The notes under the pieces are model-generated. The model worked only from the letters and a program-made list of their open reading frames with translations. It was not told the origin of the DNA and ran no database searches. Below, piece after piece: positions 3,156 through 37,843 of a DNA stretch of 64,000 nt (its first letter is position 1; each line of letters begins with the position of its first letter). Position numbers and translations under genes: made by a program. Source of the stretch: Podarcis filfolensis (taxonomy: Eukaryota); the NCBI GenBank assembly GCA_964270895.1, contig OZ185436.1. The stretch is one strand, 5' to 3'.

Positions 3156-6053
3156 GGGGATCAAGGTAATGATGGCGCTGCTGGTCCGCCAGGTCCTCCT
3201 GGACAGCCGGGTGCAAGAGGGCCCCCTGGAGACACAGGAAAAGATGGCCCAAGGGGACCCCCAGGCCTTCCTGTAAGGCGTAGTTATTAGCTAAGATAAC
3301 TGTTGAAAACTAAAATGCATGTTTTGCGGGGATATCCTGCTCATGAATGCATTTCAATTATAAGTTCCTGAGCCTCGAACTCAGATGTATCAAGGTGCTA
3401 AGGGAAGGATACAGGCATTTTTGGAGCAAAGAGTAAGAGCGAAGGGAAATCACTCTTCAATATCTTGAAACCAGAGGCAGAACTTATCTTCAAACTGTTT
3501 GCGTTGAACAGGGACGATAATCTAGTCAACAAAGCTTTGTGGTGGCGCCTTGCCTTGGAATGGTTATCTTGCATTTTGCAATGAGCAGCTAATATTCTGA
3601 CAATTCTGCTTGTAGATTCTAGCAATATGGCAGGCTTTGGGGTTTTATCAACATTCAAGTTTCCCTTGCTGATGCAGCAGCAATCTCTTTTGGCAGTGCC
3701 CATGGGATTGTTCTGTAGGGCAAGCGGTAGTTGTGTCATAAAATGATCTTCACAGTAGTCTTTTATTAACTAACCATTCATACTCAGTCCTTAGTCATTA
3801 AATTAATCACTAATTTCCCTGCTGTTGAATTAGGAGAATTAACAGTCATTATCTACTAAGCAAAGATAACTGAGATGAGATACAGTTTATGTGTTCAATG
3901 TTAATCCACAATAAATAGAACCATAGCATACCTGTCTGTATTTTCACTTTATTAATGACACTAATCTAAATCATCAAGACATGGCAACATTTCTACGTTC
4001 CCTAAGTCAATGAAATAACTGAAATAACGCAATCTCCTTAAGCTTCTCTTCTTCACTGTTGTGCTTTTTAGGTGGGAGGGGAGCGTTTTGAAAAAGTAAT
4101 TTTAGAAATGCATTCATTGTCTCTTTATTTAAATAACTTAGATTTGTGTTTCTTTAGGGTGAGAAAGGACAACCTGGAGAAGCTGGTATCATGGTTAGTA
4201 TGCAATCTATGGTATTAAAACATATCCTAATGGATTGATTTCACATATTAAGCATGAGAAGCTTGCCTAGCCTACCTCAGATGTGTGTAACCTCCTCCTC
4301 TTCCTCATTCTGCTCTATAATAGTTTTATACAGCTCCTTTCCTTGACTATGCTTTGGCCATCTAATCACTACCCCTAAATACATGTCTACCATCTGTGCC
4401 ATGTTGAGTTTAGAACAATTGTCAGGCTTAATTGTCTAGGGCTTATGAAACAGTCAGAGTCTCATTTGTTTTTACGAGTCAGCTTTCTGTACTGCACCAT
4501 CAGAAAAAATAAGGTGAGCCTCTTTCCCCAAGCACTTTTTCGTTCTCTTCCATCTTTTGTTGTCCTACAAACATTTCGCATAAGCTCTTTTGTCAGGCCT
4601 TATTTAGGTTATTTCTTTACATCAATATTGTAATATTTTTTAATTGCTACATGCACTGACTGTGGCGCATGAGAACTACAAGTGCCAAAACCTAGACTAT
4701 CAAAAGACTTGCTGACCTCTTTTTAAGTGTCAGAACATTTGTAATAAGATACCATGCTAGCAAACTTAACTCCCAAGTGTATTTCGTCATAGGAGAAATA
4801 CCCATTTCCACTTCTGCATCCTGTGCGTGCTACTGCATGGATGACCCACTGCCCTTTCACAAGCCTTTCAAGGGTACTATATTTACAGCATCTTGACGTA
4901 AAAGATCACAGGCCATGAGTGAAATTTTTATTTATTATTATTTTTATTTATTACATTTATATACCACTCTTCATTTGAGGATCACAGCACGGTTTACAAT
5001 ATAAACACACAAAAATACGTAACATAATAACAAATAAAACAACACCTCCACGCAGAGAGATTTTAAAAGGCCATAGGTTGTTTAATTAGGCAAAGGCCTG
5101 GAAGAAGAGAAATGTTTCCACATGGCTGCTAAACATATGTTGGTGGTTTGTGGTATATTCTAAGAAGCAATCTTCCCACTGTGTGCCCCCACCCCACCCC
5201 ACCACCAATAGGCTAGGATGAGTTGAAAGAACCCCCCAGAACAGCGCATGGGCAGAGGAGAGGGAGATCGTTATAGCAGGCGAGCAGAAATGCTCGTGCT
5301 GACAGAGCGATCTCCTTAGCTCTAAGCTGAATTATTCCCATCATGTTTTGAGGACCCACCCTATTCCTGCGACTGTGTTTTGTTTTGACTGTTTTTTCTT
5401 ATTGAATTAAAAAATGCTGAAATCCACCCTGAGACCTGCAGGTGAGGAAAGGGTAATAATCATAGTGGGCAGGATTCAGCTAGTGAGTCCTGTCAGCACA
5501 AGGGCTTCTGTTTGTGCAGTGGGGCTTTCTCTCTCCCTACCCCAATAATTCCCTTTTAAAGCTTGCGGTAAGGAATTCCATCGTTTTAACTATGCATTGT
5601 ATGAAAAAGTGTTTCCTTTTTCTGAATCTTCCAACATTCAGCTTCATTGGATGGCCTCAGGTATTGTGTTTCTATTTAAGTTTTGTGACTGGTTACACCC
5701 AACAGCCATTTTATAGAGGTGCCCATGTCGCTTCCTCTAAATTGCAAATGGACCTTTGGGCCCCAAAAAGATTGACAGCCCAGCAACATTTTTAATGAGC
5801 TTGGCTGCGTTTTGTTTTGTTTTGAAAATGGTACAATTTTATTTGTAACATTTCCTAGACATTGGAAAAAAAATGTTTTCATTCCTGATATTTTTAAGTC
5901 AAACATAACGTGCTTCACTTATTTGTTTTGAAGGGTGAGCCTGGTATTCCAGGAGGAAAAGTAAGTTATTTATGTTTCTTTCTTTCAAATGCTATCTGCA
6001 TTGAGACAACATGTTCCCAACCCTATCTGTCTGTCTGTCTGTCTATCTGTCTG

Positions 6054-6094
<41 letters not shown>

Positions 6095-9000
6095 TTCTAC
6101 CTCACAACTCAGTTATCACAACAGAGTCACAAAATATCTCCAACTTGAAAGTAAAATAACATGGCAGTTAAAACTACTAAACACATTTAAAATAACCTTT
6201 TTAAAAACAAAAAAAAACCAGCAATACAATAGTGCAAAGCAATCCTCTGATCCAGAGCAGACTGTGGTTTGTTTCTTGCCCAGCGCAGCAGCAGAATGAG
6301 CAAGGGAGGAGCAAAGCTCTTGAGATTTCAGTAGCATCCACCAACATCCCAAACTACAGGGGAGTTGTGTAACTATTGCATTGTAATCAGGGCTAATCAC
6401 ATGGGGCTCACCCATCCATGGATATGATAGATCAAACATTATTCACTCTGTGCTGTTGTATCCCTGAAGCTGATCCAGTACATGAAAGCTTCTGCCATAA
6501 CAGTCTTTAAGGTGTAACAAGACTCTGCCATTCTTGCTGCAAGAAGTGATCACAGCTACCCCTCTAGAAACTGTCCAAATGGAGTGGTTTGCTAATATCT
6601 GGACTGGAGTTTTAAGAAGCAAATATCTGTATATATTTCTCCAAGGCAGCTGAGTCGGGGGCAGGATATGTGTGTATTTATTTTGGATTGTGTTAGCTAA
6701 AGATCCTTTTCCATATAATGGACCTTAGAAGGGCCACCAAGTAGCTGTGGCCAAGTTGGAAAACACTTTATTATTAATTCATGCTGTCAGAGCTACCCTA
6801 GGTCCCAGCTCACAAAGGACCAACGCTGCTTCGTTGTTAAGTATAAAAGTCTTTATTGAAGTTCAGTTTCACTTCCAGAGCCGCAGCGCGCAGCCCCACG
6901 TCTAAAGTGTCAGACCACTGATGCTCCGTCTGAGTCTCCTCCCCCTTGACACCAATTTAAGATTCTAGCCTTGCTCCACCTTCTCCGCTGCTCCTTCCTC
7001 CTCTGGGTCCGCCTGCCCGCCGGGGTTCCGCCCTTTCTAGCCTCTTCTCCCGCTGATTCCCCTGAGCCTTCTCCCTCCCTCCGGCGGGCTTTAGGAGCTG
7101 GTTCCCCATCCGGGTCTCCTGCTGTTCCGCTCGCCTGCACATTTGAACTTGGCGCGCGCGCCCAGCCAGCAGCTTTCCTCCTGACCGTTCCACTGCTGCT
7201 GTCACTGCTTCCCCCATCGGGGGGGGGGCTAGCTGCAACTGACCTCCCCTCCGTTGGAGGCGTGGTCAGCCCTGACTCCCTCTCTGGAGGAGACACTGCT
7301 CCTGACACATGTGACTCCTCCCCCCCACTACGCTCTGGTGGGGAAACTGGTCCTGATCCTCCACTGCTGCTTTGGGGTTCCCCTCTGGCTCCTTGTTTCT
7401 GGTGCGTCCCCCCTGGGACCCCCCTTGCCCTGACCATCGGCGCCCCCTTCTGGGAATCTTCTGATTCGCTGGAGAAGCTCATGGAATCTCTCGGGCCACT
7501 GTCATACTCCCCTACGCTGCCCTCGGATTCTTCCCCTTCGCTCTCCCAATCCTCTCTCCCCAGTGCTCCTGCTCCTGATTCCCTGACACATGCTGTTCAG
7601 AACTGCACATAACCTATGGCTACAGTATGTTTAGGAAACACGTTTAAGGATTACATTTCAGTGTGTTCCACAGATAATGAGTGATGTCTTCATGATTTAT
7701 CCACACTGCAAATAAGACTACTCTGAGCTAATAAATGAAATCTCTCCATCTCTCTTCTGAACAGTTAGAAATTAAGTATTAGAAATTAAGTCCCAACTTC
7801 TGGATCAAAAATATTTGGCAGTTGCTTTTCTGGTTAGGCTTACAGTGTGAACTGTTGAGCTTCTGCCAGCATTGACCCTGGGAAACTTAATGCACTTTTG
7901 TATTTCAGTGTCACCTATGTGTGTTCTATTTCATCAGGGTGATGCTGGAATCCCAGGAGAACCAGGGATTCAAGGGCCAAAGGTAAACTTCCTTTTTGTA
8001 GCTCCCCGCCCCCAGTCATATATATTATGGGTAACAAAGTAGAATCAATGCAGTATTGGCATACAGGCTGATTGTGTTAAATTTCAATCCTAAATATTTT
8101 TGGTGATTGAGAGTCATATTCTACACTACATAGAGCAAACTGAATCAGAAATTAAAGATTGTTTTTCCCTTTCACTTTGGTCCTATGGGGCTCAACCATT
8201 CTTAAAGAATAGCTTGAATAGCCATCAGAACAGCTGTACCGTGTTTAAAGACTGTCATTTAGAGCCTGAATTCTTTTTGAAGGATGCTCAATATTTGGAC
8301 ATTGGGGTGAAAGCAAGATTGTAATGTTCACCTAAATTTGTATTAATCTCAGGGAGAACAAGGAAGTATTGGGCCCATAGGCGAGAAGGGCAAGGAAGGA
8401 CTACCAGGGCCAAAGGTAAGCATCTCCTTGAATGGTACAGTAAAACTGATGAACACCCTTCTTAGAAAATGAGAGTGTTCTTTGCACTTCTTTTGAACGC
8501 TACAGGGAAAACAAGGAAGCGTTGGCCCAATGGGAGACAAAGGCATAGACGGTAAACCAGGGCCAAAGGTAAGCAGCGCATGGGAAAGCATAAAAAGACT
8601 GGCACTTGCCTTGCTCAAAAACTAAGAGTTTTCCACTCCACCTTTTTTAAACACTACAGGGGGAACCTGGAGGCCCTGGCCCAATGGGAGACAAAGGCAA
8701 AGATGGTCTACCAGGGCCAAAGGTAAGTGGTGCATGGGAAAGAATAGTAAGACTAGCACCTGGCCTGCTTAGAAACTGAGAGTTTTCCACTACACCTCTT
8801 TCAAACATTACAGGGAGAACCAGGAAGTGTTGGCCCAATGGGAGAGAAAGGAACAGATGGTCTACCAGGGCCAAAGGTAAGCATCTTCTTGAATGATACA
8901 GTAAAACTGATGAACACCCTTCTTAGAAAATGAGTGTGTTCTTTGCACTTCTTTTGAATGCTACAGGGAAAACAAGGAAGCGTTGGCCCAATGGGAGATA

Positions 9001-12000
9001 AAGGAATAGATGGTCTACCAGGGCCAAAGGTAAGGAACACATGGGAATGGATAAAAGACTAGCACATGTCTTGTTCAGAAACTGAAATTTTTCCATTGCA
9101 CCTCTTATAAACTCTCCAGGGAGAACCAGGAAGTGTTGGCCCAATGGGAGACAAAGGAATAGATGGTCTACCAGGGCCAAAGGTAAGCAGTGCATGGGAA
9201 AGAATAAAAAAAGCTAGTGCTTGCCTTGGTGAGAAACTGAGAGTTTTCCATTGCACCTTTTTAAAACACTACAGGGAGAACCAGGAAGTCCTGGCCCAGT
9301 AGGGGAGAGAGGCATAGATGGTCTACCAGGGGCAAAGGTAAGCAGTGCATGAGAAAGGATAAAAAGGCTAGCACTTTCCTTGGTGAGCAACTGAGAGTTT
9401 TCCATTGCACCTCTTTTAAACACTACAGGGAGAACCAGGAAGTCCTGGCCCAGTAGGGGAGAGAGGCATAGATGGTCTACCAGGGCCAATGGTAAGGAGC
9501 ACATGGGAGTTGATAAAAGACTAGCACATGTCTTGTTAAGAAACAGAGTTTTCCATTGCACCTTTTTTAAAACACTATAGGGAGAACCAGGAAGTCCTGG
9601 CCCAGTAGGGGAGAGAGGCATAGATGGTCTACCAGGGGCAAAGGTAAGCAGTGCATGGGAAAGAATGCTAAGATTAGCACAATCCATGCTTAGATACTTA
9701 GAGTTTCCTATTGCACCTCTTTCAAATAATACAGGGAGAACCAGGAAACATTGGCCCTGTGGGAAAAAGAGGCATGAGTGGTCTACCAGGGCCAAAGGTG
9801 GGTATTACATGGGAAAGGATAACAAGATCCTAAGCACATAGCCTGCTAAGAAACCAAGTTTTTCCATTCTCCCTCTTTCAAAATTGACAGGGAAACCGGG
9901 GAAGCATTGGCCCAACAGGGGAGAGAGGCATGGATGGGCTACCTGGGCCAAAGGTAAGCAGTGCATGGGAATGACGGCTAAGATTTAGCACATGCCCTGC
10001 TTGAAAACTTAAAGTCTTCCATTGCACCTCTTTCAAACACTACAGGGAAATCCAGGAAGCATTGGTCAGACTGGGGAAAAAGGCATAAAAGGGCAACCAG
10101 GAGCAAGGGTAAGCAGCACATCAGAAAATATACTAAGACTTGATGATACCTGCTCAGAAACTGAGAGTTCCATTGCCCTTCCTTAAACACCACAGGGAAA
10201 ACGAGGAAGCGCTGGCTCAGTGGGAGAGAGAGGCATAGATGGGCTACCAGGGCCTAAGGTAAGCAGTGCATGGAGAAGAATGCTAAGATTAGCATATGCC
10301 CTGCTTACCAACTGAGAGTTTTCCACTGCATCTCTTTCGAACATTATAGGGAGAACCCGGAAGCATTGGCCCAATGGGAGAGAAAGGCTTAGATGGTCTA
10401 GCAGGGCCGAAGGTAAGCAGAGCACGGGAAAGATTGTAAGGTTGTTTAGTTCATTTAAGTTTATGTATATGGCACATTTGCACAGTGAGCTGTTCCTAAA
10501 GCAGCTTACAACAAATTCCCTTTTTCCTATTAAACTGCAAAACATTGATTGGGGAGAAAGCAGTTTTGTAAAGACAACAACAATTCAGCAACAAACGTAG
10601 AATATACTGTCTTCAATATTACAAAAATATAATCTAGACCTAACGCCTAAGTATAGAGCAAAATGAAAGTTAACGGACAATAAAAACAGTACAGCAGAAG
10701 AATGGTCTTTTAACTAGATGGTTCACATCTGGCTTCCTCATCTGTCCTCCAGAGGAGGCTGGCAGAAACAGAGGGCAGTGCTGAGGAGGGCAGTGGTGGT
10801 GACTCTTCTTACCCAGCCTCCCAGATGTCCAGCTGCTTGTACTGGTCTTATTGCCCTGCTTAAAAATTGAGACTTTTCCATTTCACCTCTTTCAAACATT
10901 GCAGGGTGAACCAGGAAGCCCTGGTCCAATAGGAGAGAAAGGCATAGATGGTCTACCAGGGCCAAAGGTAAGCAACGCATGGATAGATAGATTGATTTAT
11001 TGCGGCCATTGGCCCATATCAGAAACAATACATCAAAATTTATCCATAAACAATACAATTTAAACAGTTCCAAAATTAAAACACCCATATAAAACCAATT
11101 TTACTTCAGTTAAGTAAACACTATACACAATAAGCTCCCTCTATGTAAACTGCAATTCAAATCCATCAGATTTTGGGGGGTATGCGTCTTAGTTCTGGCA
11201 CTTATTGATGGTACTTAAGTTTAGCTAAGCTGTCAGAGTCATACAGAGATCCATTTCTCCTCTTTTGAAATAAAACATTAATCAGGTATCTAGCGACTGC
11301 AAGGGATCTACTTGTATCTTCGTCGTTTAATAAGTATATTATTTGGGCTTCCTGAGGTCTATCAGCTATTCTCGATAAATATGGGGCCAGAAACTTGGAC
11401 CGTGAAGCCGAATGTAATGGACAACAGAAGATTATATGGTATAACGATTCTATAGATCCACTTTTACAGTCACAGAGGAGTGAGATCTGTCCTTTGGAGA
11501 GTCTGTTACCCAACACGTTTGATGGGAAAACATTGAATCTAGCCTTTATAAAGGCATACCTGTGCGTCACCACAGATAAGGTAGTTAAATAAGATGGAAG
11601 TTTCGTAGGTGGTGTTAAGCCAAGGTTTATCGGCGAACAGGTGCCACCACCTGTCGCAATATTAAATTGTAAATCCATCTCCTCTAATTTGTGAGTTATA
11701 ATTCTCTTGGCAGAAATTAAATCCAATTTTAATAGTTCAGATGGAGATAGTCCTAGGGACACAAGTTTCCCATGTAGTATTTTTGCCCAGGGGCTAGGGA
11801 AGTCATCTCTCCAGAGACACTGTATCAAGAGGAGATTTGGAAGTTTATGCCATAATGCCAACCAGTAACAAAGGATGCATTTCCATAATGTGGTTTCTAG
11901 AGATGTAACATTTAGTTCCAGACGTATAGCAGTATTGCTTACACACCTGGGTAATTTTAGCAACCTTCTTAGAAGCTGGTTTTGGATTACCTCCAAATGG

Positions 12001-15000
12001 GTTAGATTAACAAAGGGCCCCCATATTGGGATTGCATATGCTATTGTTGCAATCACCTTTGCCTTGAAAACTTTTAACATTGATGGAATATGGAAAGCCC
12101 CATCTGAAAAGAAAAAACGCAGTATCGCAAAGGCAAGGGCTTTTGCTCTGTTTAATACATATGCAAGATGGACCTTCCAGCCCATGTTGTGTTGGAGAAG
12201 GACTCCCAAGTACTGAAATTTAAAGACTTGGTCAATAGCTTTTCCGTCTATTCTCCAATTATAGGTTTTTCGACTCTTGGAGAAAATTAGGACTTTGGAC
12301 TTAGCATGGTTAATTGTAAGAAAATTTGATTTGCAGTAAACATCGAAAATTTTTAATGCCCTCCTAAGGCCGACTCTTGAGAAGGAAAGGATCACTGCAT
12401 CGTCTGCGTAGAGTAGAAGGGGGCAACGATATTGGGCAAGACGGGGGGCGTGGATCGTTTCTTGAGAATCTATCAGAGGCACCCTCATATCACTTATAAA
12501 TAGATTAAAAAGGGTCGGAGCAAGGATACATCCTTGACGAACACCTCTATTGATAGTTACTGAATTTGAGAGGTCGCCGGCCGGAGTGATTCTCACCCTG
12601 GCGGCCGATCCGTCGTGCAATTTAGTTATTAGCCACAAAAGTCTTTTGTCTATTCCCCATCGGGCTAATTTTCCCCAAAGTAATCCTCTGGGGATGCTGT
12701 CAAAAGCGGCCTTTAAATCAATGAAGGCCGCACAAAGTTGGCCTCTATTTGGGGAGGAATATTTCCGGGCAAGGTGGTATAAAACTAAGACATGATCAAC
12801 CGCTGACTGATTCGGTCTAAAACCAGCCTGTTCTGGCCCAATCAGGTTGTTCTCTTCGGCCCACTTAGTAAGCTTAGTTAACAAGAACCGTGCATATATT
12901 TTCCCAATTAATGACAATAAACTGATATTCCTGTAATTTCCCGGATCATCTGTCGAGCCCTTTTTATGAATTGGAACAATAATCGCCTCCTTCCATATTC
13001 TTGGTACCTTCCCACTGTTATTTACGGCATCAAACGTAGCGGCCAGGATTTTCGCCCACCAGTCTGCATGAAGTTTTATAGCTTCCGCCGGGACTAGGTC
13101 AGGACCGGGGGCTTTTCCGATTTTAAGATTAGAAATGAGTCCGTGGATTTCTTCCGGGTCAGTGGGTGGCCAAAGAGGGAGCTGCTCATCAAATCTATCG
13201 ATTGTATTAATATTAAGGTCTGGTACGGCAAAATAGTTCCTTAGAAAGGATTCCCAAACTGGGGCCGGAATAACTGTTAAGGGGTATCTTTTAGATTTTC
13301 TGTTAACCAACAGCCAGAATTTTCGGGAATTACGGGTACTTGAGGCAGCTATAAGTGCTTGCCAGCGGTTCAGTTGCCATTCCTGTTTGGCCTTTTTTTG
13401 CACATATTTGTAAGCTGATTTTGCCTGATAGTACTCCTTGGGAAGCGTAGTCGCCCCTGAGGATTTGTAATCATTATAAATAGCACAAAGATGTTGTTTG
13501 GCTTGTTTACAATTACGGTTAAACCACAGTGCACCTGTCTTAAAGTGGGCCCAATTTGCCTGGTGGGTTGGGACAGTAAAGAATGACGTAAGGTCCTTCA
13601 ACAGATTGGCAAATAGATTAATAGTTTGATCGTGTTCATATGAGGTTATGCCAAGGGCTGAATAGGTTTGTATGATCTCCTGCTGAAAAAATTCGGAATA
13701 TTTTTGAGCCTGCGTTACAGACCACTTTATACCCTTCACTCGTAATGCCGTATTAGTACCCTCTACTGGGTTTTCGGCGTTAGTATCTAATTGAGTTGGA
13801 TGACTGTGCTCAACCCCATGCCAGTCTAGGTCAAACGTAGCAGCAAGTGGAAGGTGGTCACTGAGCTGGATATTGCCAATCTTAAAAGAGAGAGCTTTCG
13901 AAATCAGGTCACTCGAGGCTAAAAGGTAATCTAGTACACTGTTTGATTTTATACCTAGGTGGGTATACTCCCCCGGTATATCAGGAGGGCAGCAACCATT
14001 CAGGGGTACTAGGTTTAAGCGAATAGCCATTTGGTAAAGAAGTACTCCAGCCTCGTTTACTTTAGAGTCTTTTGAGGCTCTCCCTAAGGCATGTCTCAAA
14101 TCATAATTGTCGAGGCATGGAGCAGTCCACCATTTAGCTTTAGTTAAATCGACCCAATTTGCTGCTATACGTGCGTTAAAGTCACCACCAATTAAGGATT
14201 GGCTATTGGAATATTTGACTCGGCATGATACTAGATGATCTTCTAATATTTCCCATCTATCATGCAGTTCAAGGGACGAACCCCCTGGCGGGAGATAGAC
14301 ATTGGAGATTAACAGTGATACTTTCCCCCCCGACATCAACCCGGATAAAGCATAAGGGGGGGCAGTCGAAACTAATGAAAATTTGAAATGCAGCTTCAGT
14401 GAGATACCAATTACTAGACCACCTTTCGGCCGTCCTCCTTTCTGGGAGGGGCAAGCTGGAAGGGATAGTAGGTCAAATCCGTTTATGACAATTTCACCCT
14501 CCTCCCAAGTTTCTTGCAATAGAATGATATGAAACGAGTTGATATACGACTGGAATTCTGGGTCACATTTTTTCCTACGCCAGCCAGCGATGTTCCAACA
14601 AAGGATCGATATTGGTGGTTTTCTGGGTTGTCCGGCTAACCGTCATTTAAGCAACGCATGGGAAAGGATAGTAAGATTAGCGCATGTCCTAAATAGAAAC
14701 TGCGTTTTCCATTGCACCTCCTTCAAATATTACAGGGAGAACCAGGAGGCAATGGCTCAGTAGGAGACAAATGCATTGATGGGCTACCAGGGCCAAAGGT
14801 AAGCAGCATATGGAAAAGGATAGTGAGGTTAGGCATCATTCATATCAATGCAAGCATATCTGCTTGCTTGACAAAACAATCTCCCCTCTCCTACCCTCTC
14901 CCCACTGATCTGGGGGTTCTCCCACCCACTCCAGCAAATGGCAGGGCACAGGGGGAGAAGAGGGAAGGAAATTGTGCTAGTAGAATGCCTTGTGTGGGCT

Positions 15001-18000
15001 TCTGCTAGCAGAATCTGGATCCAGCCCTGGAACTTTTCCATTGCACCTCTTTCAAACATTTCAGGGAGAACCCGGAAGCCCTGGCCCGACAGGAGAAAAA
15101 GGCACAGATGGTCTACCAGGGCCAAAGGTAAGGAACACATGGGAAAGAATAGTAAGACTAGCACCTGGCCTGCTTAGAAACTGAGAGTTTTCCATTGCAC
15201 CTCTCTCAAACTTTATAGGGAGACCCAGGAAGTGTTGGCCCAACAGGAGAGAAAGGCACAGATGGCCTTCCAGGGCCAAAGGTAAGTATCACATTGGAAA
15301 GGATAGTGAGACTAGCACCTGGCCTGCTTAGAAACTGAGAGTTTTCCATTGCACCTCCTTCAAACATTACAGGGAGAACCAGGAAGTGTTGGCCCAATAG
15401 GAGTGAATGGAATAAATGGTCTACCAGGGCCAAAGGTAAGTATCAAATGGGAAGGGTAGTAAGGTCTGGATATGAACATGCAAAATGCTTCATTCGCAAT
15501 GAAATTGCAACTTGCCTTTACAGCAGCATCCCCTCACATCTAATGGGATGTTTCACTGCCATGCTCTCCAACATTCAGGAGCAGCTTATCAGATGTTTGA
15601 AGAAAACTTTTGTAGCTGAAAAAGTCCACATGTAGAAGACTTCCCTTGGATCATAGCCCAAGACTAGTATTAACCCTGCTTGGTAACAGAGAGCAAAATG
15701 AACCATGGTAATCAAATGTATGCATCAAAACACAGGTGGTCATTTTTGTTTCAGGATGATGACCATTTTGGATCAGAGAGGTGTTGGGAGGGTCCTGCTT
15801 AATCTGCTCCCCAACTGCTTCTTTTCTTATGTAACTCCTTCCCCTCCCAAGCCTCTTCCTTTCCATATGATTCTCGATGTATGTTTTACTTTTGGAACAC
15901 GCACAAGACATGAATGGTGCAGAGCAGGGTATTTGCATGCTTACTGTGAAATGGTGAGGTCCAGGTTCACATGAAATTCCGTTTCATGTTGAATTGGTGA
16001 GACAGCTTGAGCCCTTTTGTCTATGTGATGGTGAATGCTGAAAAGCAGGGCAGCTAGTGTGGTTTAAAGAGCTGTATGCACTTGGATTTCCACATGGGAG
16101 GATGGCAATGGAATGAGCTTTGGCTGGTATTGGCACATAGATATCAGAAATTGCTAGTGTGCTAGCAGGGCTTCTGGTGCTGCACATCCAACTTCCCATA
16201 CCTAGTGACCTCAAACCCTGGCTCTTTGAATGTTTTATCCTGCACTTATGGAGCTCTGTCCTCCACACCAGGCACCATTAAATTAGAACAAAAACTGCCA
16301 AATTAAGGCAAATTAAGATAGAACGTTCATTTTCTCTGCTAATACAGGATAAAAAACAATACTGCATTAATTTTTTATAAAATAAAATGTAGAATCATTC
16401 TAACATAAAGACATGCAGAGTAAAAAACACACACAAACACGAATCTGCTAATTAATTTAATGCATAATAATTCAATAATTTGATTACCAGTACAGGAAAT
16501 GACAACAGAGTGTACAAATTTTATGTCCCTACAGCAAACGACATTATTTCATAGATGGCATGTTTATTTGCTCTGGTAACAGGAAGAAGCAAATAGGTTA
16601 GTTTGGAAATACTGTATCATGAAATCAGGATGGAATGTAAAATAGCATAAGTATCTTTGTTTCGCATGATCAGCATAACATTAGCCCAAGGAAAATAGAG
16701 AACTGAAATATTTTCAAGAGTTGGGAGTCCTTTTCCAAAAAATAAAAGAGAAGAGGAGTTTGGATTTGATATCCCGTTTTATTACTACCCTAAGGAGTCT
16801 CAAAGCAGCTCACAATCTCCTTTTCCCTTCCTCCCCCACAACAAGCACACTCTGTGAAGTGAGGGAGGCTGAGAGATTTCAGAGAAGTGTAACTAGCCCA
16901 AAGTCACCCAACAGCTGCATGTGGAGGAGTGGGGACGCGAACCCGCTTCACCAGATTACGAGTCCACCGCTCTTAACCACTACACCACACTGTATCTGTA
17001 ATCAGCCTCTTCTAGGGCATTGTATCATATGAGCTGCAGGTTTCTTTATTACCTGAAGATTTTCTGATCCATGGGTCACCAATGCAGTGTCCAACATAGA
17101 GGGATTTTTGTGGGGAGGATCTTTCTGGAGATTACAGCTAGGGTGCTCTTGCTTCCACTGCCCACCCCCAAAAAATAGGCTTGGAGGAAAAAAATTGAAA
17201 TTTCTTCAGATTGCAACTGTGCCCACAAACCCAAAAGGGGTGGTGACCCCTATTCTATTCTGAATGTCAGGCTCAAAGCAAAATGAAGACCTATAGATGA
17301 AATATAAATAAATCATAATCTCCATTTAGGAAGGATGCCCAGTCTAGACTTGAGTTAAAAGTGTATTTGCATTTAACCTGCAAGTTTTTTGCAATGCAAA
17401 TTGCTTCAAGGGGGGGGGGTTGTTGATAATTAGTAATGTCAGAGCTAATATGGAGAAAGAATCTAACCCTTTCTTCCTCTGCTGAGGAAATCGCCTCTGA
17501 TAATCCCTATTTGATTCATAGAATCCTAGAACTGTAGAGTTGGAAGGGACCCTAAGGATCATCTAGTCCAACCCCCTGCAATGCAGGAATATGCAACTGT
17601 CCCATACGGGGATCGCACTTGCAAACTTGGCGTTATCAGCACCAGGCTCTAACCAACTGAGCTCCTTTGAAATAAAATACCAGATACAGAAGAGGATTGT
17701 TTTCCCTGGACCACAGCAGAATTAAATTCCCTCTCCATATTGCCTCTGGTAATTATCCTGCCCACCAAGCAATTACAATTTGCATTCTTAAAAACCTGCC
17801 ATGATGCACACAGAACTGCATTACTGTAGGAACAGCAGGTCTCATTTAAGCCTCCTACTTTTTCAGTCTTCCAGGAAAGAAGATAGGTGTGATATGAAAT
17901 GATAAAACAGTAAACTGGCCAGCTGCATTGAGCTAGATGCCCCTGACATATGACCATAATGGTGATACCTTTCTTGCTTTCTGAAGCACCCACCCAGCTG

Positions 18001-21000
18001 AACTTAATAGCTTTTCCCCACTGAAGGAGGAAGTGGAGCAAGCCAGCAGAGAGGGGACAAAAATGTATGGCTTGAACCAGTGCAACGTTCATTGGTATGC
18101 TTCTCTGTTCAATCAGTTAGGAAGATGGGAAAAGAGTGTTCTTTTAATTGCCTCTTTGGTCATTCCAAGATAAAATATTTTAGAACTGGTTATGTAATTT
18201 TTCATGAGTCTTCTTCTTGAAGAAAGGGAAACATTTGTTTATGCTACGTCCATTTAGGCAAGTTGCTAATCCTTTAGAGCTAATCTGTATTTCATGAAGT
18301 CTGCATCAAACTTACCTTCCTCTTTATTAGGTTATAGCTCTTTTTATGCTGGAAAACTGAAGAACGTAGTGTTTCAGAATACCTACAGTAAATGTGGCAA
18401 CTATCTTAATTTATAAAGATTTGACGTGCTAGAGTGTCTTTTTGCTACTTGCCATGTTAATTTTTCATAAACTACAGAGATTACAAAAAGAAATATTTGA
18501 CAGTGTAAACAATGCAAGCACAAAATACAATATGTGAAAGCAAAAGTATAATCGTGACATGATTAAGTTTATATGCCAGGCTAATTTCTTGTTCAAAAGT
18601 TAGTTGGTTTTGCAGCAGTGTGGTGTGCATATTGTTACACTAAAACCTGCAGGGCGGTTTTATTATCTTGTATCTGATTTGGCTGATTCGTTTTGCAGCT
18701 GGATTGTGTGAAGGTCTTTTAAGCCTGCTATTGCTTATGCTGTGCTCCTCAAGACACATAGATATGTGACGTATCTTGTCTCTGAATCAATATTTTAGAG
18801 TAACAAACATTTATTTTCAGGGTGAACCTGGTGAAAGAGGAGCAGATGGACACATTGGGCCAAGGGTATGAATTACTTTTGTTCTTTCCTTAGCTTGCTA
18901 AAATAAATACTCAAGCTGAAATAAACATACACTGTGAGATTTGTGGAAGATAAATTAACTAGGGATTTTCCCCGTTGTCAACAATACAATCAGTATAAAT
19001 ATTCTGGAGTAGAAAATGGTTTCCTTGAATTTCAGTCTTTGACATTTGTGTGTGGACTTATAAAATGGGTTGGGTACTAGTTTTGACTTTTATAGGCCAT
19101 TGAAAACCTCAAAGGGAGGTTCCATGTGCTATGACATCTCTGTATTCCATATTGAAGTGCATTCGAATCATTTTGCACCAGGACCTATGTCATGAATCAT
19201 TGTCAGGGACTGGCAGCTCTCTGATGATTGTGTTGCAGAAAGAAGAGGGCAGGAGATTGATCCAGGAGGAGGGGGCAGTTATTTATGGTGTTTGGCTCCA
19301 CCTGCGAGGCTGGAGCCGGGGGGGGGGGCTGGGGGCTTAAGAGAAAAGGTCCAACAGAAATGGAGGTGGGTGCAAGATGTGTGAAGAGACAGTAAGATTT
19401 AGACTGCAGCCCTAGACACGCTTAACTGGGTGGTTCCATCATTGAACTCAAAGGGGATTTACTACTGAGTAGACATACATAGAGAATTGCACTGTTTGGC
19501 TGCAGCCCTATAGCTGCTTCCCTTTGAATAAGCTCCTTTGGAATCTGACTTCTTATTTACTTCTGAGTAGACAAGCATAGGATTGTTGTGCCAAAGCATA
19601 GAGGAATAAAAATATTTTCATAGCTCATGACATTGAGAGTGTGCTTGGAGGATTTCCGTGGTGGAGGAATTCCGTAGTTGTGTTGCTACTACTGCAAAAG
19701 CATCTGCCAAGGTTATCTTAACTAATGATGGCTCTAAGAGCAGGACCTCCAGTACCCAATGGGCCTTAATGGGACTGTCACAGCATAGGTGGTTTATTCC
19801 ACTTTCATCCAGTGAACAGTTATTATCTAGACTGTAGCAATTAAAGCACCGTATTTAAGTATGAAACTAGAATTTACTGTGACTTCTTAATAGCATGTGA
19901 CAAGCAGAAAATTATTTCTATTCCCATAAAGTTTACAATTACCTTTTCTTTTCTTTGTAGGGTCCTCCAGGCCTGAAAGGAGAACAGGGTGATACAGTAG
20001 TAATTGACTATGATGGTAGAATCTTGGAAGCTCTCAAGGTAACCTTTATGATAATAATGTGATAATTATACAATTTGCTTCAACATGAAGTGGCACTAAA
20101 TTTTAGTAACATTAGAAGTGCCCTGATACATCAGACCAAAGGGTGATTTGGCTCAGTGTCCTGTTTCCCACCTTTGGAAAGCCTACAAAGAAGGACATGA
20201 TGGCAAGATTGATACTCAAATAGAATCAAAAGTCCAACATACAAGCCAGTTTGAGGAATTTGGGCATGGTCCACAGAAGCCATCGCAAACTGTCCACGTT
20301 GCCAGAGCTTTTTGCTACAACTCCACCACCAAATCTGTCATCAAAAGCAAGGGACAATCAAAGGCAAAGGACCTTGAAAGAGAAATGTTATGACAAGGCA
20401 ACAATGTCTGGATGCTCTGGAAGGAAGTGAGAGTCAAATGTGGAATCCTTTATACAGTTCATGCTAGGCTAGTGCAATAATTTGTGCCTATAGTGGTATA
20501 TATGTTGTTTCTGAATAGGCCAAAAGCAGCTAAGCTGTTCAGAGTGGTGACTATCAAAACTGTTTTTAGAAACCACTAGAAACAGCTGTAGGCAAATTCA
20601 GGCACATCTGGTGGGAGTGACTCACAAATGAAATAAGCAGCTCTTTGTTACTTAGCGGGTTGTAACTTCCATAATGACTGCAAGGAGACTGATTGGGGTA
20701 GAATTTCAGTTTGTCCTTTCAGATCAAATGGGGGGGGGGGTTATATAATAATGTTCTCAACAATAAAAAATGTTTAGATGATGGTCTTTTCAATTGGAAA
20801 AGTATTTGAATAGCATAAATATTTAATTCTTAATACATTTGAAAACTATTCTAACTGTTTTATAACAGGCTGCAGGGAAACTCAGATTGACGGTAAAATG
20901 GTTTTTTGCCAGATGCCTGTGTGGATTTATTTTTTTTAATGGCCTAGCATGTGGCTTTTCTGCTTTAGATTTTTTGATCATGGTTCTCAGAAATTTTCTA

Positions 21001-24000
21001 CCAAACATTTGATTTCTGTTAACAAAATAATGACATAATCCCTTAGGTTGAATCATTGGCAGCATGATGTCAGACACAGTGATAATCAAGTAATGAATGT
21101 GTTTAATTGCTTTGTTTCATAGTTTCTGGCTTGCTTCTTTAAAATTGCATTAGGCATTATTTTGAAAACATGCTTCACATTTCATGTTGAAATCAGTGGG
21201 ATTTAAGAGTGCTTACGTTTGGCTCACTATTCCCATCATCATTACATTAAGATGGCAGAACTCCCAAGGGGAGTTGTCCTCTGTCCCAGCTAGGTGTTGC
21301 TCTAGTCATCTGCAGGGGAAACTGTAGCTGTGCTCTAATGGTTGAGAATTCTGAAGACTCCTTTGGAGACAGGCAGAAAAAGCAGCAGGGGGTCATGGAG
21401 TCACTTCCCACCTTTCTCTATTGTTTCTGATCATCCCCTTCCTAGCCTCTTGGGGAAATTATCTGCATTATGGAAGATGGATTTAAATTGGAAACTAGAT
21501 GACCTGCTAACCGTAGATTTTGTTGCCAGTTGTTTTTCATCTCTGTTAATTCAAAATGTTTGTATTAACAGCAGTTAACAGATAATTTGCTGTCTTTTGT
21601 TCCAGGGCCCGCCAGGTCCCCAAGGGCCCCCAGGCCCCCAAGGAGCTCCAGGACCAAAGGTTGGGTTTTACTCCCTTTTACATAAAATGTATTTTGTTCT
21701 GTACTGTACTCAGTACCTGCTTGGCAACACTGAGCTTGGTTTATATGTGAATCTTCTGTTCATGGCATATCCCCTTGGATAACTTTGGGGGAGTCAGAGT
21801 GATGGGTAACGTGTTCAAAGTTTCAAAGATTAGCAAAGGGAGAAGAATTTTAACAAGTGTCTATAATCACTTGTTTGTGGGCCCAGGCATAGTGAGACCA
21901 TGGTGGGATGTGCAGATGGCAAAGGAAGCAAGAGACAAGTGTTGGATTCAAATTAAGCCACAATTTTATTGGTTCCAGATAAAACAGTGTTGGCAATGGC
22001 ATTAGGCATGAATTGATTGATGAGCTAGCCCACATGCTGGCTGAAGATCCTCTAGGGCTGACCTAGTTTAATCTCTATTTGGAAGGTTTGTTGAAAAGTC
22101 ACCAGGTCACAAGCGGTATAGGGCTTTGTCTTGGCTTAAATAAATTTGACACTTCCCTTGAAATATGTAACATTAATCATGCACCTTTAAAATATTGAGT
22201 ACTGCAATATATACTTCTTTGGGGGAAGGGAAAAAGATTTTTATTGGTTAGATTCATGATGCAGTCATTGCTCTGATTTATCCCGTTTTTTTGTTCCAGG
22301 GGGAACTTGGATTGCCTGGCCCGCCTGGAGTTGATGGAGAGAAGGTGTGGCTGGGAGCATTATTAATAAATTTGCATTCAGTTGTGTGACTAAAGTTCTG
22401 TAATAGGCTGAAACTACCTATTAAATGTTTGAGAGTTACTAAAGTGGTTGGAATGCATGCAGTCTTCAGAGGCACATATAGGCAAATTGCAAACTCTTCA
22501 TCCTGCAGTTTTTCCAACCATTCCATATCCTTGACAACCTACTATTNNNNNNNNNNNNNNNNNNNNNNNNNNNNNNNNNNNNNNNNNNNNNNNNNNNNNN
22601 NNNNNNNNNNNNNNNNNNNNNNNNNNNNNNNNNNNNNNNNNNNNNNNNNNNNNNNNNNNNNNNNNNNNNNNNNNNNNNNNNNNNNNNNNNNNNNNNNNNN
22701 NNTTTGGTCTCTGTGAGGTTCACACCTGATTGTCATTTCCCAAATAAAGTGTTCATGCAACCGGAACTACAGCTCTGCTCCACCCTCCAATCATTCCTGA
22801 GCACAGAGAGGGAAGACAGTGCCATTATCCGATGTTGCATCTTTCCATCCGAGTCTTTATTAAGCACCCCTCCATGATACATGATCAAATTATTGCAGTC
22901 AGTAATTTAATTTACATCTAATTCAAAATAAATACTTAAGATTGTTGTGTGCAGGATGAGTGTGTGCATGTCCGAATCTTTATTGAAGTTTCCTGTGCTT
23001 TGAAGTGGTCACATCCACCTGATCTATTAAATTCCATTCCACTTCTTAATCAGTGTTTGATTGTCAGCAGTTCCTCTAACACAATCAAAATAAAAAATAT
23101 TCTAACAGAGTAACACTGGAAAATAATGAATACTATTAATTAAAACCCAATTATCTTACATTCCACCCCCCCCCCTTAAAATTACAGGGTCCTAAAGGTT
23201 CAAAAGGAGACCAAGGAAGCTCCGGACTCATAGGACAAAAAGGAGAGAAAGGAGATGTTGGCATGAGTGGTCTCCCAGTATGTCTGTTTTCAGTATCTAT
23301 TACTAAATACTGTTTTCACAGATACAGTTGTTTGGTATACAAGGTGCATTACACACACATTATGGGAAATGGGTGTGTAAGTGCCTGGTATAGCGTCTCT
23401 GATAATCTGAGGGGTGGGGAGATCCCTGAAGGAATTCATAAAGCTACTTGGAAAACAAGGTTAGATTCCTAAATAGAGCCTCCTCACAGAGGCTCCCTGA
23501 GAAAGTCATGGTCCACACTTTAAAGAGATCAGTAGGCCCTTTTTTGGCTGGAGCCTGGAATGGCCACTTTGCCCTCAGTCAGGGTGGCATCAGCTGCTGC
23601 AGTTCTCAGCATCTGTTCACTAGCAGGATTTGTGTCCAGCCTGTCTCCTCTTTCTGTTCTATTTTGGCTCCCCAGGTTTTTGCACATCCCACTAACTCAG
23701 CGAGTATCTGGACAAGATGTGCAATCTGATAGGTAACAAGCAGCCTGAGGTTTCTTTTCTTTTTAAAGTTCCTGTGACTTCTTTTGGCAAAACAACTCCC
23801 TCCCCTCAAATTCTATCCTTCAGTTTAAAAATCTACATTTGTGTTTATGGGTGGTGTTCAACTAAGGTTTACTCAGAGGAGACCCACTGCAATTATGGAA
23901 CATGGCTGAGTTAGGTCCATTCATTTAATTGGTTATGCTCTTGTAAAATACCACCCTCTGCGTTCCCACAGCATTCTTTCTATTGCTGCATCTGCACTCA

Positions 24001-36110: not shown

Positions 36111-37843
36111 GCTGTTATGATTCACTTGGTGCTTTCCAAGAATACAAAATTGTTACTTACTTTTTGCAGGGACCAGATGGATTACCGGTACCAGGATGCT
36201 GGCACAAGGTATCGTACCCTACCTTAGATTTTTTCTTTGGCTTGAATTAAGATTGTTGCTTAGCAAGAGTAAGAGCATGGAACTAATACATAATTGAGCT
36301 ATTTTGTAAAGGGAAAGGGCGGAAAGGGGGAGAAAATGAACTGAGGCAAATGTAGATATCTTTGCTAAATACCCACATATTAATATAGCCATCATAGAGG
36401 GATTAGACCAAAGAGACAAGAAACTCAGCATTTTGCTTATGAAATTATAACTAAAATTAATTGGTCAGGAAATATGCCAACTTATTCCTGCTTGATTCTA
36501 TCTTTTTGATTCTATGCCTGGCAAATAAATCTGGTTTATTTCCATTTTAATGCTGACTTTGCATCTTGCTTTCATGTCCGCATTATGCTATATATATTTT
36601 TAAAAAACATTTAGATTAGTGTAAATTTAGGGCAGAGCTGCCCATGATGGTGGCAAACCAGTGTCCTTGAATGCAGCCCACAATCACACAGCAGTAAATT
36701 TGTCCTGGCAGGCAGCAATTTCCATGAGAAGCAGAAGGTGAAAGTGGGCCGTCACCATAACCCTCTTCTTAAGTTATTTTTCTGAGTCAGGTTTTAATAC
36801 TAGAGCTGCATCGATTTTGGATTTCCATACAGTATAGCTAAACAGGGGGAAATGGCTCTGCTGCCATGACTGCTGAGACTCTTTCTGCAAATACTTCATG
36901 CTCCCCCACAACTATATGACACTTTTCAATGGGCATGAAGCCATGTACAAAAGTCAGTTCCCCCATTTTAGCTCAGCTCTTGTGTGAGAGGCGAAAACAA
37001 AACAACCTAGTGCCTTTTTTTTTCTTTATTATTGTAACTCTTCCTATGTCCAACCAACCTTTTCTGAGAGTCTCTGTGCAGCTTTCCGCTGTAGTGTTTT
37101 GTTTTCAGGGCTACATATACAAAGAAGGGCAGCAAATGACTGGGTGGTGCTTCTGTTTCAAGCTATGGTAGAGAGGAAAGCCGTCCCAACCAACAGGAGG
37201 ATTGCACAAGCAACCTAGAGATTATTACACATGTCAGGCATTATTAAGCAAGGGCAGAGCAATCCCTCAGATCTACTGACTAGAAAAGATGAGGATAGGG
37301 TGGAGCTGTCTTTCTACCACTGAGGAAAGCATGTGGACATAGATCTATTGCAGGCATAGATTTCCATAGGCCTATTGCAAGTGGTATTTCTACCTGCAGT
37401 AGCTAGTGTTAGGCCCCCAAATGGAGCATTTTAGGGACAGAATGGACTCAGCAGAGGCAGGGCAGAGGTGGCCTTCAGGCGACTGAATCCAAAGCCCATT
37501 CATTCCCTCAAGAGGCCCTGGGATTGGGCCCACTAATCTCCCCACCATCCATCTCCTCCAAAAAATTTCCGAATAGCGAGAATTAAAGAAAAAGAATCAG
37601 CACTGCTAGATGGAATAATTACATTGCCTACCTTCCACCTTGGATGATACAGCTTTGGAAAAAGTAGATAGTCGTCTACTTTACTCCCTCCACATCCCTC
37701 CACATATGATAATAATTATAAAAGATGGAAGTCAGCAATGTCACCAAATAGTTGCAAACACTGTCTCGCAGTAGATGAGAGTGAGATGCATGCTATGCCC
37801 GTGTGTGTGTTTTTTTAAACATGTTTGTGTTCTTTTACAGTGA
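3156..37843 (+). CDS. COL23A1: Collagen type XXIII alpha-1 (transmembrane MACIT collagen), 3' portion; multi-exon, 5' exons upstream of the window
   Basis: Phase-0 Gly-X-Y exons, each flanked by AG/GT: 3156-3272 ([39 protein letters not shown]), 4158-4193, 5934-5960, 7938-7982, a 19-copy 63-nt array at 8353-15435, 18821-18865, 19961-20038 ([26 protein letters not shown]), 21606-21659, 22300-22344, 23188-23277, 24451-24540, 25734-25784, 27010-27075, 28203-28229, 29881-29907, 30918-30989, 31095-31148, 32160-32186, 32996-33049, 33683-33769 (...GLDQPCPV), 36170-36208 ([13 protein letters not shown]), and a last exon starting with TGA at 37841-37843. The [11 protein letters not shown] linker and the [21 protein letters not shown] terminus match COL23A1. 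Synteny with PHYKPL and HNRNPAB agrees. Using all these exons would give 776 aa within the window. Confidence 0.97.
6023..6094. repeat. (TCTG)n/(TCTA)n compound microsatellite
   Basis: Seen directly. Confidence 0.95.
6785..7588 (-). mobile_element. Solo LTR (Gypsy/ERV-type)
   Basis: Termini are TGTCAG...CTGACA (TG..CA with a 6-bp inverted repeat). A perfect 5-bp TSD CATGC sits at 6780-6784 and 7589-7593. The body is GC- and CpG-rich relative to its flanks, with an AATAAA on the minus strand near 6852-6857. Confidence 0.85.
10441..10850. mobile_element. Unclassified ~400-bp insertion in array intron 14
   Basis: The array intron consensus breaks at 10440 and resumes near 10851. The left part looks like a decayed, reversed LINE tail. 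Confidence 0.45.
10983..14647 (-). mobile_element. 5'-truncated non-LTR retrotransposon (RTE-X-like, clade inferred) inserted in an intron of the exon array
   Basis: 14-bp TSD TAAGCAACGCATGG at 10969-10982 and 14648-14661. On the minus strand the 3' end is AATAAA followed by a short TCAA/TCTA repeat tail. 3' UTR is 10983-11201 and ORF2 is intact. The clade call rests on remembered motif patterns, not a search. Confidence 0.9.
11202..14642 (-). CDS. LINE ORF2: APE endonuclease, reverse transcriptase and C-terminal Cys/His knuckle
   Basis: The frame is open from 14642 (right after an in-frame TGA at 14645-14643) to the stop at 11202, giving 1146 aa. This extends the track ORF by 41 codons and adds ILCWNIAGW...[11 protein letters not shown] motifs: WNI, QET, NVYLPP, GDFNA, DYLL, SDH. 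RT motifs: [39 protein letters not shown]-terminal CDC...E...H...C. Confidence 0.95.
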   Translation of the reverse strand, partial: RLAGQPRKPPISILCWNIAGWRRKKCDPEFQSYINSFHIILLQETWEEGEIVINGFDLLSLPACPSQKGGRPKGGLVIGISLKLHFKFSLVSTAPPYALSGLMSGGKVSLLISNVYLPPGGSSLELHDRWEILEDHLVSCRVKYSNSQSLIGGDFNARIAANWVDLTKAKWWTAPCLDNYDLRHALGRASKDSKVNEAGVLLYQMAIRLNLVPLNGCCPPDIPGEYTHLGIKSNSVLDYLLASSDLISKALSFKIGNIQLSDHLPLAATFDLDWHGVEHSHPTQLDTNAENPVEGTNTALRVKGIKWSVTQAQKYSEFFQQEIIQTYSALGITSYEHDQTINLFANLLKDLTSFFTVPTHQANWAHFKTGALWFNRNCKQAKQHLCAIYNDYKSSGATTLPKEYYQAKSAYKYVQKKAKQEWQLNRWQALIAASSTRNSRKFWLLVNRKSKRYPLTVIPAPVWESFLRNYFAVPDLNINTIDRFDEQLPLWPPTDPEEIHGLISNLKIGKAPGPDLVPAEAIKLHADWWAKILAATFDAVNNSGKVPRIWKEAIIVPIHKKGSTDDPGNYRNISLLSLIGKIYARFLLTKLTKWAEENNLIGPEQAGFRPNQSAVDHVLVLYHLARKYSSPNRGQLCAAFIDLKAAFDSIPRGLLWGKLARWGIDKRLLWLITKLHDGSAARVRITPAGDLSNSVTINRGVRQGCILAPTLFNLFISDMRVPLIDSQETIHAPRLAQYRCPLLLYADDAVILSFSRVGLRRALKIFDVYCKSNFLTINHAKSKVLIFSKSRKTYNWRIDGKAIDQVFKFQYLGVLLQHNMGWKVHLAYVLNRAKALAFAILRFFFSDGAFHIPSMLKVFKAKVIATIAYAIPIWGPFVNLTHLEVIQNQLLRRLLKLPRCVSNTAIRLELNVTSLETTLWKCILCYWLALWHKLPNLLLIQCLWRDDFPSPWAKILHGKLVSLGLSPSELLKLDLISAKRIITHKLEEMDLQFNIATGGGTCSPINLGLTPPTKLPSYLTTLSVVTHRYAFIKARFNVFPSNVLGNRLSKGQISLLCDCKSGSIESLYHIIFCCPLHSASRSKFLAPYLSRIADRPQEAQIIYLLNDEDTSRSLAVARYLINVLFQKRRNGSLYDSDSLAKLKYHQ
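14880..15028. mobile_element. Unclassified ~150-bp repeat insertion in array intron 16
   Basis: The intron consensus is interrupted by a GC-richer block ending in AGAATCTGGATCCAGCCCT; boundaries approximate. Confidence 0.4.
16766..16992 (-). mobile_element. MIR/CORE-like squamate SINE
   Basis: Minus strand: tRNA-like head (CAGTGTGGTGTAGTGGTTAAGAGCGGTGGACTCG...), CORE-like GGGTGACTTTGGGCTAGT, and a LINE-type tail. Confidence 0.7.
17516..17664 (-). mobile_element. tRNA-derived SINE with CR1-type 3' tail
   Basis: Minus strand: AGCTCAGTTGGTTAGAGC...GCTGATAACGCC head with degenerate A/B boxes, followed by the CR1 tail GGACTAGATGATCC...CCCTTCCAACTCT...ATTCTATGA. Confidence 0.8.
22547..22702. other. 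Assembly gap (156 N)
   Basis: Run of N inside a COL23A1 intron. Confidence 0.99.
24655..24735 (-). mobile_element. CR1-type LINE 3' end fragment (similar pieces near 47535-47612 and 62325-62380 on +)
   Basis: CATAAG repeats followed by GATCAGGCCAAAGGCCCATCTA..TCCAGCATCCTGTTCTC, the reverse complement of the common squamate CR1 3' end. Confidence 0.55.
28543..28802. mobile_element. Composite insertion: inverted Penelope-like terminal fragments around a LINE-tail fragment
   Basis: 43-bp inverted arms at 28547-28589 and 28744-28786 (41/43 complementary) resemble the squamate Penelope terminus (CAGAACAAACTTAGTTGGTCTCTAAGGTGCTACTG). The 12-bp direct repeat TCTTGTAATTAT flanks them at 28531-28542 and 28803-28814. 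Confidence 0.6.
34111..34297. mobile_element. Tc1/mariner (Tigger-like) MITE fragment
   Basis: CpG-rich patch ending in GTAACCCGAGGTATGTCTCTA, resembling a Tigger-type TIR; the left end is degenerate. Confidence 0.4.
36068..36109. repeat. (GT)21 microsatellite
   Basis: Seen directly, about 60 nt upstream of the last coding COL23A1 exon. Confidence 0.95.

Follow-up and report, generated by a model that had tools for sequence, protein, structure and literature searches.

A 19-copy tandem array of a collagen exon in the COL23A1 gene of the lizard Podarcis filfolensis

A 64,000-nucleotide stretch of the Podarcis filfolensis genome (assembly GCA_964270895.1, contig OZ185436.1), referred to here as the window, carries 19 head-to-tail exons on the plus strand (8353-15435), each exactly 63 nt long and each encoding (Gly-X-Y)7. 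On the evidence of its encoded motifs, the gene is COL23A1, which specifies collagen XXIII, a type II transmembrane collagen of the MACIT group. The copies appear to be maintained by purifying selection, and we consider it probable that they are translated, most of them being joined to one another by serial splicing. No earlier description of the array was found in the literature; its kind, tandem exon amplification, is known.

The exon array and its gene

The array was delineated using a regular-expression scan for AG-(GGN NNN NNN)n-GT together with a listing of each copy (Table 1). All 19 exons are flanked by AG on the 5' side and GT on the 3' side, are in phase 0/0, and contain no stop codon and no insertion or deletion. 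The Gly codons are intact at 132 of 133 positions, the sole exception being Gly13 of copy 16, which has become Cys (TGC). In these respects the original prediction, made from the sequence without database searches, was reproduced. It had also given the introns as 87-93 nt, which holds for 15 of the 18 internal introns; the remaining three, following copies 14, 15 and 16, measure 492, 3768 and 266 nt, respectively. Exon length is therefore invariant over the 19 copies and intron length is variable.

Scanning the 64-kb window with a profile of the 154-nt unit returned the same 19 units and no further full or degenerate copies. Tandem Repeats Finder reported a period of 154 nt at 8350-10433 (13.6 copies) and at 15034-15463 (2.8 copies), with additional periods of 306 and 461 nt within the array. 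The two longer periods, together with the pairing of units 2/5, 1/4, 3/6 and 7/8/9, indicate higher-order repeats of the kind made by unequal exchange. Compared unit against unit, the introns are 40-87% identical (mean 66%) and the non-Gly exon sites are on average 75% identical.

The gene was assigned to collagen XXIII, and not to collagen XIII or XXV, because its NC2 interruption and C-terminal motifs agree with the former in a published MACIT alignment, which bears out the identity originally proposed. One exon encodes the interruption specific to collagen XXIII, VIDYDGRIL...(D/E)AL, the counterparts of which are MVDYNGNINEAL in collagen XIII and IIDYNGNLHEAL in collagen XXV (Additional file 1, PMC4678570). 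The 3' end of the exon at 33683 codes for GLDQPCPV, and a further exon encodes the C-terminus. MACIT proteins terminate in W(H/N/Q)K (PMC4678570); the C-terminus QPCPVGPDGL.VPGCWHK is that of collagen XXIII, collagens XIII and XXV ending in WNK and WQK, respectively (Additional file 1, PMC4678570). The first exon in the window is the collagenous exon at 3156, and the 5' exons of COL23A1, in which the cytoplasmic tail, the transmembrane helix and the furin site would be encoded, fall outside the window. The exon order 117, 36, 27, 45, 63, 45, 36 plus non-collagenous sequence, 54, 45 and 90 nt is common to the window and to three of the comparison contigs described below (L004, L006 and L008).

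Table 1. Positions of the array, its copies and other features in the window
Feature	Position	Strand	Basis
Whole array, 19 units (63-nt exon + intron each)	8353..15435	+	repeat finder, regex scan, unit profile
Copy 1; ancestral-type upstream intron retained, basal in exon tree	8353..8415	+	listing, tree
Copy 2	8506..8568	+	per-copy listing
Copy 3; clusters with skink units 2 and 3	8660..8722	+	listing, tree
Copy 4	8814..8876	+	per-copy listing
Copy 5; partner of copy 2 (87% intron identity), in three-unit higher-order repeat	8967..9029	+	listing, identities
Copy 6	9120..9182	+	per-copy listing
Copy 7; exon identical with copy 9	9275..9337	+	listing, identities
Copy 8; last residue Met (ATG|GT donor)	9429..9491	+	listing, splice scoring
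Copy 9	9581..9643	+	per-copy listing
Copy 10; weakest donor of the array (GTGGGT)	9735..9797	+	listing, splice scoring
Copy 11	9891..9953	+	per-copy listing
Copy 12; most divergent peptide of the array	10046..10108	+	listing, identities
Copy 13	10196..10258	+	per-copy listing
Copy 14; followed by 492-nt intron with ~410-nt insertion	10350..10412	+	listing, unit profile
Copy 15; followed by 3768-nt intron	10905..10967	+	listing, unit profile
Copy 16; Gly13 replaced by Cys (TGC), the sole Gly break in the array; splice sites intact	14736..14798	+	listing
Copy 17	15065..15127	+	per-copy listing
Copy 18	15219..15281	+	per-copy listing
Copy 19	15373..15435	+	per-copy listing
Unique 45-nt exon 5' of array; orthologue in L006	7938..7982	+	scan, contig comparison
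Unique 45-nt exon 3' of array; orthologues in L003, L004, L006, L008	18821..18865	+	scan, contig comparison
Exon encoding collagen XXIII-specific VIDYDGRIL interruption (VIDYDGRIL...(D/E)AL)	19961..20038	+	comparison with published MACIT alignment
Exon encoding MACIT C-terminus	36170..36208	+	comparison with published MACIT alignment
Insertion of ~410 nt, intron after copy 14, single occurrence in window	10437-10850		
Intact antisense open reading frame (ORF) of a long interspersed nuclear element (LINE), 1105 aa, endonuclease and reverse transcriptase (Exo_endo_phos_2 + RVT_1), intron after copy 15	11202..14519	-	ORF/domain analysis
Insertion of 196 nt, intron after copy 16, single occurrence in window	14825-15020		

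Selection on the copies and origin of the array

A parsimony count of changes per site was made over the tree of 154-nt units and sorted by site class. Positions 1 and 2 of the Gly codons changed 0.07 times per site (one change over 14 sites) and the four AG/GT bases not at all. By comparison, the values were 2.86 for Gly third positions, 2.07, 2.07 and 2.71 for positions 1, 2 and 3 of the X/Y codons, and 2.95-3.96 for introns off the splice sites. The rates at Gly codons and splice sites are thus not those of the introns. The same ordering was seen when the copies were compared in pairs: the fraction of differing sites was 34% in introns, 25% at non-Gly exon sites and 0.8% at Gly position 1-2 sites. 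Relative to the array consensus, 15.5% of non-Gly exon sites and 16.5% of Gly third positions are different. With these rates, 41-44 differences were expected at the 266 Gly position 1-2 sites and one was observed (Poisson P ~6e-17 to 4e-18). Simulated neutral copies gave approximately 6 stops per array, none being observed (P=0.002). Ratios of nonsynonymous to synonymous substitution rates (dN/dS), calculated according to Nei and Gojobori, were 0.02 for Gly, 0.55 for X, 1.29 for Y and 0.82 for X and Y together. Finally, no aromatic residue, Cys or His occurs at X/Y, where 3.4 were expected (P=0.03).

Because these contrasts fall between site classes inside the same copies, gene conversion and youth are excluded as their source. 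The conservation of AG/GT and Gly codons, set against the drift of X/Y codons and introns, points to genuine coding exons and not to a neutral minisatellite, in agreement with the original prediction. Purifying selection, as read from these rates, holds the array stop-free, Gly-unbroken and splice-competent; the identity of the X/Y residues is almost free, selection there being weak. The pattern illustrates the requirements of a triple helix with unusual clarity, Gly being retained, X/Y nearly unconstrained and the splice sites frozen.

The single copy that the original prediction had given for human COL23A1 was borne out and extended to other vertebrates. Human collagen XXIII (540 aa) has one 21-residue unit in the published alignment, within residues 250-321 (PMC4678570). 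Four vertebrate contigs from Logan (L003, L004, L006 and L008), reached via read-through ORFs carrying the VIDYDGRIL exon, each contain one 63-nt exon, followed by a 45-nt exon and then the VIDYDGRIL exon. In L006, the 1.8-kb interval bounded by two 45-nt exons holds a single 63-nt copy.

A fifth contig, L002, derives from PacBio HiFi reads (run SRR31508491) of the skink Prasinohaema aff. flavipes (Scincidae; PMC12400806). It contains three intact units between unique flanks, all with AG/GT and 7/7 Gly. A fourth unit (L002:607-666) has decayed: its acceptor CAG is gone and its 5' half lacks Gly-X-Y, its 3' half (GINGLPGPK followed by GT) being still discernible. This copy is an internal control that shows the effect of relaxed selection. 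The skink inter-unit introns are 86-90 nt long and collinear from end to end with those of the Podarcis array, to whose consensus they are 63-73% identical, and the block TTAGAAACTGAGAG is conserved in the inter-unit introns of both. Collinear introns of similar length indicate the same duplication junction and, thus, a single origin of the two arrays. The exon tree places the first units of both species at its base, closest to the single-copy orthologues; skink units 2 and 3 cluster with copy 3 of the window. Since both lineages share one array origin, the first duplications are placed, by these sequence comparisons, before the split of Scinciformata and Episquamata (skink versus lacertid). 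The copy number is now 19 in the Podarcis window versus at least three, plus one decayed, in the skink.

These data bear on two rival readings of the array. The array might be a neutral intronic minisatellite of pseudo-exons, of which one is spliced while the others are intact through youth or gene conversion. The higher-order repeats and the identical exons 7 and 9 do attest to recent unequal exchange or conversion, but neither youth nor conversion can produce the contrasts between site classes (25% and 34% versus 0.8%), the array predates the separation of skinks and lacertids, and the skink copy that is truly unselected has decayed. We regard this reading as highly improbable. The array might also be a repeat mis-expanded during assembly, tandem repeats being prone to mis-assembly and a run of N being present elsewhere in the window (22547-22702). 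An artefact is unlikely because the longest exact repeat within 8300-15500 is 79 nt and the introns of the units have the low identities given above. Moreover, each unit is distinct, three different insertions lie within the array, and the independent, PacBio HiFi-derived skink contig has the same kind of array. Of the readings considered, we give mis-assembly the least credence.

Probable splicing of the array and its predicted product

The history that best accommodates these data would begin with the tandem duplication, in an early squamate, of a 154-bp COL23A1 cassette comprising a 63-nt phase-0/0 collagen exon and ~91 nt of intron. Unequal crossing-over would later have raised the number of cassettes to 19 in the genome of this lacertid, and ordinary serial splicing would join most or all of the copies. 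The collagenous domain N-terminal to the VIDYDGRIL interruption would thereby grow by up to 18 x 21 = 378 residues, adding ~100 nm of triple helix at ~0.29 nm per residue. The collagen XXIII ectodomain, shed or membrane-bound, would then be a far longer rod than that of the mammalian 540-residue protein.

Splice sites were scored against position matrices derived from 39 COL23A1 exons outside the array, taken from four species. The array donors scored 7.4-12.8 versus a mean of 7.5 and matched U1 at 6-8 of 9 positions versus a mean of 6.2. The array acceptors scored 4.4-13.6, mostly 6-10, versus 13.4±4.0, and are below average yet in range; a purine-rich AAACAYTAC stretch lies immediately before the acceptor AG. 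Introns of 84-105 nt occur between two ordinary COL23A1 exons in all four species, indicating that introns as short as those of the array are processed in this gene. In the ~91-nt intron, a conserved CTTAG/CTGAG motif is a candidate branch site; its distance is 49-57 nt to the donor and 34-42 nt to the acceptor. Judging from these distances, a steric block against joining neighboring copies is not evident.

Several observations weigh against serial inclusion of the copies. The acceptors are ~1.4 standard deviations under those of the gene's other exons and resemble those of cassette exons, such that some skipping is plausible. Because the X/Y positions evolve almost neutrally, the detected selection appears to be for a helix with unbroken Gly and for no particular sequence. 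Copy 16 carries a Gly-to-Cys change, and three copies suffice in the skink, so length is not tightly constrained. The protein searches yielded no transcript, no junction read, and no spliced or annotated lizard collagen XXIII; we infer inclusion in mRNA from selection only. Specifically, a search with the VIDYDGRIL exon against 1.84 billion representative proteins returned short read-through ORFs of genomic contigs and no full-length collagen, probably owing to composition filtering. When the read-through peptides of the 19 units were searched as a profile, 7 matches were obtained, of which only P0039, encoded by the skink contig, was array-like; no spliced multi-unit fragment of 36-115 aa was found. 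An antisense 193-aa ORF over copies 7-10 had zero matches in the protein search. In the cluster of P0018, the 50-aa VIDYDGRIL read-through ORFs are accompanied by P0033, a protein of 390 aa that is unrelated to them and resembles a bacterial radical-SAM enzyme; this is apparently an oddity of database clustering.

The weak acceptors would also suit cassette exons that are included in variable subsets, giving rise to an in-frame family of isoforms of differing helix length. Every subset of 63-nt, phase-0/0 exons stays in frame, the skink tolerates three copies and has lost one, and extensive in-frame exon skipping occurs in collagen XIII and in C. elegans col-99 (PMC4678570). However, near-perfect retention of Gly codons and splice sites in all 19 copies implies that each is included often enough for selection to act, and the strong donors and short introns suit intron definition. 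We regard such variable inclusion as the main rival to serial splicing, possible but rather unlikely. Much less likely still is mutually exclusive splicing of a Dscam-like kind, whereby exactly one of the 19 copies would enter each mRNA, diversifying the X/Y surface at unchanged length. The exons are indeed homologous and equally long, their X/Y positions have diversified, with a dN/dS of 1.29 at Y, and the original prediction had entertained Dscam-like combinatorial isoforms. That idea was not sustained: a crude inverted-repeat scan of 7000-19500 found no docking/selector pairing, its best pairs (14-31 nt, 70-94%) being unrelated to the unit, and two copies together keep the frame because 63 is a multiple of 3, so nonsense-mediated decay cannot enforce exclusivity. 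The distance of the candidate branch point from the donor leaves no steric block evident, and rare use of each alternative would weaken selection per copy, yet 132/133 Gly are kept. A 9-nt match of CCTCTTTCA in the unit to exon 18821-18865 was considered as a pairing site and was rejected as being at chance level.

Serial splicing of most copies is thus the reading we favor, and skipping may be superimposed on it. A more speculative proposal, which we rate as doubtful, sees in the array a length ruler that can evolve and may be regulated by splicing. Copy number (three in the skink, 19 in Podarcis) and weak-acceptor skipping would together set the reach of the ectodomain from the cell surface, with rod lengths that are tissue-specific or variable between populations.

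That collagens and other modular proteins have grown through tandem exon amplification is textbook knowledge, as exemplified by the 54-bp exon origin of the fibrillar collagens, the kringle IV-2 array of LPA, and the repeat exons of nebulin and titin. As in these examples, symmetric-phase exons have been amplified head to tail with their introns, the repetitive domain is extended in frame, and copy number varies between lineages. Unlike in those examples, the COL23A1 unit is very small (154 bp), lies in a membrane collagen and is so far confined to squamates, its use in mRNA being predicted from selection. The in-frame skipping in the COL1/NC2 region of collagen XIII and in col-99 (PMC4678570) concerns the same gene family, the same protein region and short phase-0 exons that can be dropped in frame; in those cases the exons are unique, whereas in COL23A1 they form an amplified array whose skipping is a proposal. 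With Dscam-type clusters, the COL23A1 array shares a tandem arrangement of homologous, equal-length, diversified exons, and differs in that double inclusion is in frame and docking/selector pairing was not found in the region scanned. Relative to collagen XXIII of other vertebrates, the Podarcis gene shares the interruption, the C-terminus, and the order and sizes of the exons, but has 19 copies of the 63-nt exon where human and the four contigs have one, as well as extra copies of a 90-nt and a 27-nt exon. In the literature on COL23A1 exon duplication, lizard collagen XXIII and tandem exon duplication in collagen, we found no description of the array or of COL23A1 exon amplification; the array may already stand unremarked in lizard gene models.

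If serial splicing holds, the membrane-proximal triple helix of squamate collagen XXIII would be ~4x as long as that of mammals or birds, constituting a natural experiment on the effect of rod length in a transmembrane or shed collagen of epithelia. The contrast in copy number, three plus one decayed versus 19, offers a tractable system for studying exon birth, selection and death. For annotators, long COL23A1 models are to be expected in lizards, and the array should not be repeat-masked.

Insertions and other features of the locus

The three long introns of the array each contain an insertion (Table 1), and in all three the insertion point is ~30 nt inside the unit intron. Where the two can be aligned, the LINE ORF inserted behind copy 15 shares 94% identity with a UniRef reverse transcriptase of Podarcis muralis (Lacertidae). 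Based on this identity, the element is probably of recent origin and may be active.

Two other COL23A1 exons are duplicated in the window and single in L004 and L006. The 90-nt exon occurs on the plus strand at 23188-23277 and 24451-24540. The two copies share 65 of 90 nt and 18 of 30 aa, both have AG/GT and 10/10 Gly, and only ~15 nt of each flank can be aligned; these identities point to a tandem duplication of older date. The 27-nt exon, encoding GPQGIQGHK, occurs at 28203-28229 and 29881-29907, also on the plus strand. Its copies differ at 5 of 27 nt, and their flanking introns are unalignable. That all five differences are synonymous indicates strong selection on both copies at the protein level. 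The presence of these extra exons in the same gene suggests that the COL23A1 locus readily retains exon duplicates in this lizard's lineage.

The intron 5' of the array contains a (CTAT)18 microsatellite (6023-6094). The run of N noted above is 156 bases long and falls within the intron that separates the 45-nt exon from the first 90-nt exon. Finally, a minus-strand ORF at 62258-62575 encodes the start of an RNA recognition motif (Pfam RRM_1) like those of the hnRNP A/B or D family and probably belongs to a neighboring gene; an hnRNP A/B-like gene beside COL23A1 is presumably in keeping with the neighborhood of human COL23A1.

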